A DNA stretch of 63,988 nucleotides, filler included, from Reticulomyxa filosa (lineage: Eukaryota; Protista; Foraminifera), in assembly GCA_000512085.1 (NCBI GenBank). It is 14 parts of 14 records of this genome, joined end to end, with 100 filler letters (N's around TTAATTAATTAA, not from the genome) between each part and the next. Parts side by side here need not be neighbours in the genome. Positions count along the whole stretch, not along the records: positions 31,788 to 33,454 come from ASPP01015496.1; 13 more parts are not named here. The stretch is one strand, 5' to 3'. This document shows, piece by piece, positions 31,788 through 33,454 of this stretch; the first letter of the stretch is position 1; every line of letters starts with the position of its first letter. The notes under the pieces are model-generated. The model worked only from the letters and a program-made list of their open reading frames with translations, had not been told where the DNA came from and made no database searches. A program made the translations under genes and the position numbers.

Positions 31788-32817
31788 CAGACGAAGCAAC
31801 AAGAGTCAAAGCAAAGAGAGGAAGAAGAGCGAAACACGTTAATAAAAGATCTTAGAGAGTGGACACCGCCAAACAACTACCGCATAAGAACAAAACAGCT
31901 GAAAAGGAACTTTATAAAGAATAGCGACACGAATGAATATTACGCAAAAATGATAGAGAAGAAGATTGCATTTAAGCAAGGAAGAGATAAAAACGTGCCC
32001 AAGATCGCAAATGATTTTGTACAAGAATTGTTAGAGGCATCACAGAATGAAGACAGATGTCCATTCCGACGAGTGTATGGAGTAGTATTGGGAGGAAGTT
32101 TGCAAAAGAGATTGGCAATCCGACATAAGTTTGATGGAGACATAGTATTTTTATTTCATCTAAAAAAGAAGTATCAAAACGATCATTATAAACATGCGCA
32201 AAGAGTGCAAAGAGAGATATTGACGTGGATATCAGATAGAGTGAATAAAAAAGCGAAAGAAGTGGCGAAAGATCAGAGGAATAATTTCCGAATTATAAGT
32301 AATCCAAATCGAAATATGACGATCGAGTATGAGGGATGTGAGTATGATATCTTGGTGGCATTTACGTATGAAGTGCGTTTGTATTGTCAGTTTAATTACA
32401 AAGGAGATAAAGAGCATATCTATCTGTTGGAAGACGAAGAGTTGGAAAGGATTGCCCAAGACCTGTTTGATCACCACGGTAAGTATAAAAAAGCGATTGA
32501 AGATGCGCAGATGGAAGAGTTTCCAAATCAAGGGGACATTGATTTTTTGGGTCGTAACATGAGTGCTTCATTGACACTCTTGAGCACGTACTATGTGAGA
32601 GAGACATTCATTGGCAAGGAGACACGTCTTGCCATTTTGCTGCTCAAGGCCTGGAAACAGTATCTACTTCGCAAAGGCACCGAAAAACTTATCAAAAGCA
32701 TCAGTATTGAAATGCTTTGTGTCTATGCCAAACATATCATCAAGGAAGGCCAATTAAAAAACACTAACAATAACGATAACAAGGATGACACTGATCATGA
32801 TAATAATGATGATGATG

Positions 32818-32878
<61 letters not shown>

Positions 32879-33454
32879 CGATGATGATGATGACGATGAT
32901 AATGACGCAGAGATCACCGTCTTAGACATTGTTCAACAATGTCTGCTCTTGCTCATTTATATTGGCGAGCAAGCCAAAACATCCAGGCCGTCCATGCTTG
33001 TGTGGCCTTTCGAGGAAACTCCCAACGAAACTTTGATCACGCGCGATAGGTCACCAAATGGATTAAAGGCAAGAAACGTCTACTTTGAAAGGCCCGCCCC
33101 TTCTCATGGACAATATCATCTTACGTTTCGTGTGGGTTACACAGGGGAACACACAAATTTTTTTCTGCTTTAAAAAAAAAAAAAAAAAACAAGAGTAGAG
33201 GGAGGGAGAGAGTAAAAAGAAAAAAAAAAAAACTCCAAAAAAAAAACTCCAAAAAAAAAAAAATAAATAATAAAATAATAATAAAATAATTACAGAAAAT
33301 GTTGAAAGAGATGCAACAGTAAGTACTTGGCAAGAGTTGGCCGATCAAGCCAGAATTGCCTTGGACTACTTGATGACGAATGATCCTAATATATGGATTG
33401 ATTCTTTAATGTTTTGCGGCAAAAAGACTTCATGTTATTTGTACACACAAAAAA
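31788..33454 (+). CDS. 2'-5'-oligoadenylate-synthetase-like (OAS/cGAS/CD-NTase superfamily) nucleotidyltransferase with intact catalytic motifs; both ends truncated
   Basis: GGSLQKRLAIRHKFDGDIVFL (GGS 32091-99, DGD 32133-41), EYDILVAF (Asp 32346-48), RLAILLLKAW, SISIEMLCVYA, LLMDNIIL|QNV...TWQELADQARIAL. Intron 33125-33295. The frame is open from the contig start. Confidence 0.8.

Follow-up and report, generated by a model that had tools for sequence, protein, structure and literature searches.

We describe here a 1667-bp piece of the genome of the foraminiferan Reticulomyxa filosa, the contig ASPP01015496.1 of assembly GCA_000512085.1, which occupies positions 31788-33454 of the analysed window, i.e., of a stretch of 63,988 nucleotides in which 14 parts of 14 records of this genome are joined end to end with filler letters. 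The piece is A/T-rich (GC 0.28-0.46), and it very probably represents most of one gene in an expanded, nearly R. filosa-specific family of the OAS superfamily of cGAS/DncV-like nucleotidyltransferases (CD-NTases; nucleotidyltransferase is abbreviated as NTase hereafter). Positions are counted along the whole window.

Gene structure and conserved motifs

The features of the gene are collected in Table 1. Frame 1 of the plus strand is open from 31788 to 33173 on translation, and the real coding sequence within this frame comprises only its first 420 codons; tblastn searches with paralogues followed frame 1 to approximately 33044, frame 2 from 33067 and the last exon from approximately 33295. The 407-amino-acid open reading frame at 31950-33173 was rejected as the gene product, since it leaves the coding frame towards its end and continues into the intron. 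The gene is truncated at both contig ends, and its paralogues extend for another 100-150 residues. The searches were run with the separate coding pieces, the absent C-terminus being represented by intact relatives. Rfam gave no match on the piece.

Table 1. Features of the OAS-like gene in the R. filosa piece, in order along the window
Feature	Position	Strand	Description
Coding stretch, frame 1	31788..33047	+	420 codons; N-terminal helical extension of ~45 residues, then the NTase N-lobe and the greater part of the helical C-lobe; 5′ end cut by contig edge
G102-G103-S104, in VVLGGSLQK	32091..32099	+	G-S motif of the Pol-beta NTase fold; HMMER alignment to GGS of OAS2 and OAS1
D116-G117-D118	32133..32141	+	First two catalytic acids; aligned to OAS DAD
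VFLFHLKK	32145..32168	+	Strand after DGD; spliced out in the public model as a 24-nt GT..AG mini-intron
D187, in CEYDILVAF	32346..32348	+	Third catalytic acid; aligned to OAS FDVLPAF
RLAILLLKAW	32625..32654	+	Aligned to OAS L(I/V)KHW
SIEMLCVYA	32703..32729	+	Aligned to OAS ALELLTVYA
Low-complexity N/D-rich insert	32760..32905	+	C-lobe loop; trinucleotide repeats, (TGA)38 by TRF; predicted disordered
Frame break 1	33048..33049	+	Two unassigned bases after D420 (frame 1), ahead of VTKWIK (frame 3)
VTKWIK, frame 3	33050..33067	+	Relatives: VDKWLK, VLTWLK, VKNWTE
Frame break 2	33068..33069	+	A-run of 3 (AAAGG) vs 4 in paralogue L002 (AAAAGG); one-base gap
Exon end, frame 2: QETSTLKGPPLLMDNIIL	33070..33124	+	Last base opens split Q codon; corresponds to OAS RPVILDP
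LLMDN	33100-33114	+	Frame 2
Spliceosomal intron	33125..33295	+	171 nt, GT..AG, phase 1; GC 0.29, rich in A/T and containing poly-A tracts
Final exon of the piece: (Q)NVERDATVSTWQELADQARIALDYLMTNDPNIWIDSLMFCGKK...	33296..33454	+	Final C-lobe helices; 3′ end cut by contig edge
NV	33298-33303	+	Last exon
WQELADQA..IALDYL	starts 33328	+	Last exon

HMMER pairs the GGS/DGD/D, KAW and IEML..VYA blocks of this gene with their counterparts in OAS2 and OAS1, and the exon end in frame 2 was aligned to OAS2 by profile alignment. The motifs quoted are also conserved in the paralogue family, with K287 and W289 of RLAILLLKAW being invariant across its close members; judging from these alignments, the motif set is more than a chance occurrence. 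Most of it had already been pointed out in the initial annotation, which was made by inspection of the sequence. The G-S motif, the lysine and DGD are present as described there, except that K is separated from DGD by eight residues instead of seven, and the downstream Asp of YDIL is D187, which aligns to the third acid of OAS. The C-lobe motifs listed in that annotation are likewise all present and in the OAS order, while LLMDN proved to be out of frame with the upstream open reading frame.

The intron was established by comparison with relatives. The homologue P0007 (locus L001) is uninterrupted across the junction and reads ...LIMDNIILQNVERD..., which contains DNIILQNVERD; in the R. filosa piece, the codon C|AA for Q is split by the intron and is followed by NVERD. 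The donor context is kept in DNA alignments with the two paralogue genes L002 and L003. The intron is confirmed because P0007 reads straight through the junction and because the donor is conserved in both paralogues, in agreement with the initial annotation, which had proposed an intron and had denied bacterial contamination on this ground. Such contamination is excluded by the intron together with the presence of all paralogues on R. filosa contigs.

The low-complexity insert lies in a C-lobe loop, where the predicted local distance difference test score (pLDDT) of the AlphaFold model falls below 50 (residues 343-361). The same loop of paralogues carries K/E-rich inserts, which are unrelated and of differing lengths, and it is therefore a hotspot for low-complexity expansion.

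Structural and sequence relationship to OAS

For the frame-1 part (420 residues), AlphaFold gave a confident model, with a pLDDT of 85.4 and a predicted template-modelling score of 0.83. OAS3 domain I, CdnC, OAS1 and OAS2 took the top ranks when this model was searched with Foldseek. In the comparison by Z score, OAS1 aligned to model residues 46-420 and was the best match, with Z of 18.0-18.4 over 269 residues at a root-mean-square deviation (rmsd) of 4.2 and 19-20% identity. It was followed by OASL (16.6), OAS3 domain I (16.2), yeast poly(A) polymerase (16.0), OAS2 (15.8), CdnD (15.5), Utp22 (14.6-14.7), cGAS (14.4) and NF90/NF45 (14.4); OAS1 thus leads CdnD and poly(A) polymerase by about 2 Z units, and Utp22, cGAS and the DZF proteins by about 4. 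The model accordingly predicts a two-lobe Pol-beta NTase fold, with OAS proteins as the nearest solved structures. A best structural fit to CCA-adding enzymes, poly(A) polymerases, Utp22 or DZF proteins had been named in the initial annotation as the outcome that would speak against it; this comparison was run, and the outcome was a different one because OAS1 was the best structural match.

The sequence searches point in the same direction. When the piece was searched against PDB with phmmer, OAS2 was found at E = 1.8e-4 and OAS1 at E of approximately 0.05. With a 29-row profile of the family, the match to OAS2 reached E = 1.8e-8, with the N-lobe and C-lobe colinear and with inclusion of the ILD(P/N) and the terminal W..L..A helix region, and OAS1 reached approximately 0.009; no other NTase family was found in PDB with this profile at E < 1. 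A PADLOC scan of 5027 models gave matches, weak ones, exclusively to CBASS cyclase models (CBASS, cyclic-oligonucleotide-based antiphage signalling system), and the neighbours in a language-model comparison were mostly OAS1_C clusters, with DZF clusters second.

Membership in other families was also checked. For cGAS and the cGAS-like receptors (cGLR), neither the Mab-21 domain (PF03281) nor a cGAS-like best structure was found; for NF45/NF90, we did not find the DZF_N and DZF_C domains together with degenerate catalytic residues; and for poly(A)/poly(U) polymerases, CCA-adding enzymes and Utp22, neither the Pfam domains nor a best structure of these types was obtained. The classification as a rhizarian OAS-like NTase whose triad is intact, which had been proposed in the initial annotation, is therefore supported, since motifs, PDB profile search, predicted structure and a published tree (see below) agree.

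Paralogue family and public gene models

The closest proteins in a collection of 5.8 billion proteins are R. filosa hypothetical proteins with 63-44% identity, the top two being RFI_15844 (63%) and RFI_22828 (57%). All named relatives that were looked up belong to R. filosa, and some unnamed ones are environmental, e.g., P0007 (JGI) and P0019 (ENA). An HMMER profile built from the first 8 sequences was used for an exhaustive search of 1.84 billion cluster representatives, and found 28 clusters, nearly all of R. filosa; 28 is accordingly taken as a lower bound of the family size, in clusters at 50% identity. As far as these database searches can tell, the expanded OAS-like family is almost confined to R. 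filosa.

The catalytic triad is kept in a minority of the family. The present copy, P0001 and P0006 carry GGS/DGD/D; P0012 carries ExD/D; and the fragments P0021 and P0029 retain the DxD part. On the family tree, the present copy groups with P0001 and P0002 (support 85/90) inside a clade with support 96/94, and the distribution of the triad over this tree requires repeated losses. A clade with support 100/99 reads SGC/CGY/H at the G-S, DxD and third-Asp positions. Listed by protein, P0010, P0013-P0017, P0020 and P0027 have SGC, CG(Y/N) and H at these positions, and one member has SGH and YGY. Such conserved replacements suggest a pseudoenzyme with retained function rather than random decay.

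Several side observations concern the paralogues. P0016 and P0017 (RFI_05373 and RFI_05369) share one R. filosa contig of 9663 bp, which suggests tandem duplication. Environmental relatives outside the R. filosa assembly are L001 (JGI sample 3300030627) and P0019 (on an 18,962-bp ENA contig); L001 lacks an intron at DNIIL|QNVERD, so that it must be a transcript or, alternatively, a related organism's gene that has no introns. In P0002, P0003, P0007, P0010, P0012 and P0019, a region of approximately 70-100 residues around I(E/I)HCF(S/T)Q is conserved past the C-lobe and an acidic linker. Three helices are predicted for it with low confidence (pLDDT approximately 60-68), no PDB match was found for it, and the R. 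filosa piece ends before it. On the paralogue contigs that were read, neither a CBASS effector nor Cap2, Cap3 or HORMA partners were seen.

The protein of this locus has already appeared in a published survey, in which EukProt was searched for CD-NTases (Culbertson and Levin, PLoS Biol 2023; PMC10732462). S1 File of this survey counts 1 for OAS in R. filosa and 0 for each of cGLR, eSMODS, STING and viperin, and S30 File contains EP00480_Reticulomyxa_filosa_P021013, whose letters are the frame-1 translation of the present piece from TKQQESKQREEEERN... to ...YFERPAPSHGQYHLT; it is thus the public model of the same gene. In the main tree of the survey (IQ-TREE), P021013 is sister to P024262, and then to P025644, inside the eukaryotic OAS superfamily, and this clade adjoins Tetrabaena, dinoflagellate and animal OAS sequences with support of 98-100; in the alternative trees, it stands beside chrysophyte sequences and bacterial CD-NTases. 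The survey reports no OAS1_C match for the R. filosa proteins shown (PMC10732462). By our comparison, P024262 is P0001, which is 62-63% identical to the present copy, and P025644 is P0006. The OAS-superfamily classification of this protein is therefore already published, within supplementary data and apart from any individual discussion, and the locus is not novel because the protein already stands in that tree.

Five OAS-superfamily members were catalogued from R. filosa in the same survey (P021013, P024262, P025644, P007837 and P006249; PMC10732462), against the at least 28 clusters found here. P006249 and P007837 form a second, more canonical-looking R. filosa OAS-like pair (GGSVQKGT..YDGDLVFLLN..FDVLVAF). 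This sister clade was not reached by the 8-sequence profile among the 1.84 billion proteins, and the two OAS-like clades of R. filosa are therefore very divergent.

Two faults of the public model became apparent. The public protein reads DGDI|KYQNDH, whereas the translated piece and all paralogues keep D-I/L-I/V-F-L-F at this place, and the AlphaFold model shows a strand there; the 24-nt mini-intron that was called is almost certainly an annotation artefact. The model used in the published alignment consequently lacks a core beta-strand, which is kept by all paralogues. It also lacks the true last helices of the C-lobe, because its C-terminus reads the wrong frame and the intron.

State, possible role and known relatives

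Some of our results weigh against reading the piece as an OAS-like gene. In sequence it comes closest, among PDB entries, to OAS2 domain I, which is catalytically dead. Pfam gave nothing beyond low-complexity noise on the three coding pieces, with neither OAS1_C (PF10421) nor NTP_transf_2, and on the 29 family members it gave one marginal OAS1_C match (E = 0.044), which did not reach the gathering threshold. Most family members other than those listed above lack the triad, and enzymatic data were found in the literature for no non-animal OAS-like protein. Furthermore, the coding sequence is interrupted, as the reading frame shifts from 1 to 3 and then to 2 through two one-nucleotide gaps, which were called from DNA alignment with two paralogue genes and one uninterrupted homologue; the first break appears as a one-base gap against paralogue DNA in both the DNA alignment and the three-frame translation. 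No public sequencing run contains the piece, the best share being 0.08 of sampled words, which we take to be due to the trinucleotide repeat and A-runs; four runs aligned to 32900-33454 gave no coverage, and hence no read or expression support. The closest paralogue gene, RFI_15844 (L003:2008-3550), also switches frame, in the order 1, 3, 2 and 1, when compared with intact relatives, and its public model spans one of these switches by an "intron" that deletes approximately 22 conserved residues. Frame problems therefore recur either in the OAS-like family or in the assembly, and the case of RFI_15844 fits a genuine lesion and an assembly error alike.

Because of the two gaps, the last C-lobe helices are no longer in frame with the catalytic part, and the assembled copy must be regarded as a pseudogene of very recent origin or as the result of assembly errors, with roughly even chances. 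That this member of a rapidly turning-over family was inactivated only recently, and that it yields no functional protein, has by our estimate slightly less than an even chance. The two gaps lie within 20 nt of each other, at least two frame changes are seen in the nearest paralogue gene, the public runs provided neither transcript nor read support, and repeated loss of catalytic residues in the family is typical of birth-and-death evolution. On the other hand, VTKWIK, LLMDNIIL and the last exon stay open and conserved, with 37-53% identity to paralogues, and the triad and splice sites are intact; moreover, one break falls within an A-run and is compatible with a homopolymer sequencing error, and the assembly is highly fragmented, this contig being just 1667 bp. 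It is extremely improbable that the breaks are bypassed in vivo by ribosomal frameshifting or by removal of a 19-nt GT..AG segment (33050-33068). Positions 33050-51 are indeed GT and 33067-68 AG, and the removal would yield ...ITRD-R-QETSTLKGPPLLMDNIIL in a single frame; 18 of the removed nucleotides, however, encode VTKWIK, which is conserved coding sequence in paralogues, 19 nt is far smaller than the confirmed 171-nt intron of this gene, and a suitably spaced GT/AG pair is a plausible coincidence. The 19-nt micro-intron was set aside as unlikely for the reason that it would delete this conserved coding sequence.

With respect to function, the closeness to OAS2 domain I, the second place of DZF clusters among language-model neighbours and the clear degeneration of most paralogues, e.g., in the SGC/CGY/H clade, would suit a catalytically silent regulator or nucleic-acid binder, which like OASL, OAS2 domain I or NF45/NF90 keeps the fold and makes no messenger. 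This is improbable for the present copy, which together with P0001 and P0006 retains GGS, DxD, D and the C-lobe Lys, residues that DZF proteins and OASL do not have; the DZF structures also stand 4 Z units below OAS1. An RNA 3′-tailing enzyme that works independently of a template, similar to poly(A)/poly(U) polymerases, or a ribosome-biogenesis factor similar to Utp22/Nrap, is very improbable. For the poly(A) polymerase, terminal uridylyltransferase, CCA and Nrap families, no sequence-level match was obtained at any threshold in the Pfam and PDB profile searches, and OAS1 gave both the best Z and the highest identity (19-20% vs 10-12%). The published phylogeny also groups the protein with OAS, and a housekeeping factor would not be expected to expand to 28 clusters in one species while its active sites decay.

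We return to the OAS-like enzyme as the preferred reading, for which a role as an antiviral messenger synthase may be proposed by analogy. Provided that R. filosa itself has an unbroken frame, the protein would bind two Mg2+ ions and nucleoside triphosphates at the triad site and, by the two-metal catalysis familiar from OAS and CD-NTases, would join the nucleotides into a short oligonucleotide signal, which may be 2′-5′-linked as in OAS, or linear or cyclic as in the bacterial clade-C relatives. The synthesis would probably be triggered by a nucleic-acid ligand, and the signal would act on a putative receptor; the survey detected no STING in R. filosa (PMC10732462). For the present copy, this mechanism hinges on the frame breaks being artefacts, for which the chances are about even.

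It is possible, though unlikely, that the whole R. filosa expansion of at least 28 clusters is a sensor array of foraminiferan innate immunity. Such an array would consist of a few triad-intact members, including the present copy, and of many pseudoenzymes, with the conserved C-terminal region in several of them; the active members would make a nucleotide messenger, and the degenerate ones would serve as decoys or regulators. In this array the messenger would be read by a putative receptor unrelated to STING. Neither STING nor cGLR was found by the survey in the R. filosa genome (PMC10732462).

The product, ligand and receptor of non-animal OAS-like enzymes bear on the evolution of nucleotide-based immunity, and these enzymes have, to our knowledge, been catalogued and never characterised. 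What is added here is the corrected exon and frame structure of this gene, a caution that the public model omits the real end of the C-lobe and a core strand, and the finding that the family is far larger than the five catalogued members and has lost catalytic residues repeatedly. RFI_14454 (P0006) is a better candidate for expression than the broken copy in this piece.

Compared with known systems, sequence-level similarity of the R. filosa protein to DZF proteins (NF45/NF90), Utp22/Nrap and poly(A) polymerases was not detected; DZF proteins and Utp22 are without the catalytic triad, which the R. filosa protein keeps, and the RNA-binding domain specific to poly(A) polymerases is absent from it. 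Bacterial CBASS CD-NTases of clades C and D (CdnC and CdnD) share its fold, CdnC being second in the Foldseek ranking with the tightest C-lobe fit (rmsd 2.7), and OAS is nested within bacterial clade C in the published tree. Unlike these, the present gene is a eukaryotic one with a spliceosomal intron, and its paralogues are all on R. filosa contigs. The R. filosa protein differs from animal OAS (OAS1/2/3 and OASL; OAS1_C, PF10421) in its low identity of 18-20%, below Pfam thresholds, in the extra N-terminal helical extension of approximately 45 residues or more, in the disordered N/D-rich C-lobe insert, and, for its paralogues, in the additional conserved C-terminal region, which is not seen in OAS. 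It also has S-I at the positions of Q-Y before ALELL in OAS1, which we take to be contacts of the donor nucleotide and treat as a lead only. What it shares with animal OAS is the G-S motif and the DxD...D triad in the same order, followed, again in the same order, by L-x-K-x-W, (A/S)xE(L/M)L..VYA, (I/L)(L/M)D(P/N) and the terminal W..LA..A helix, as well as a family that is a mixture of active and degenerate paralogues.
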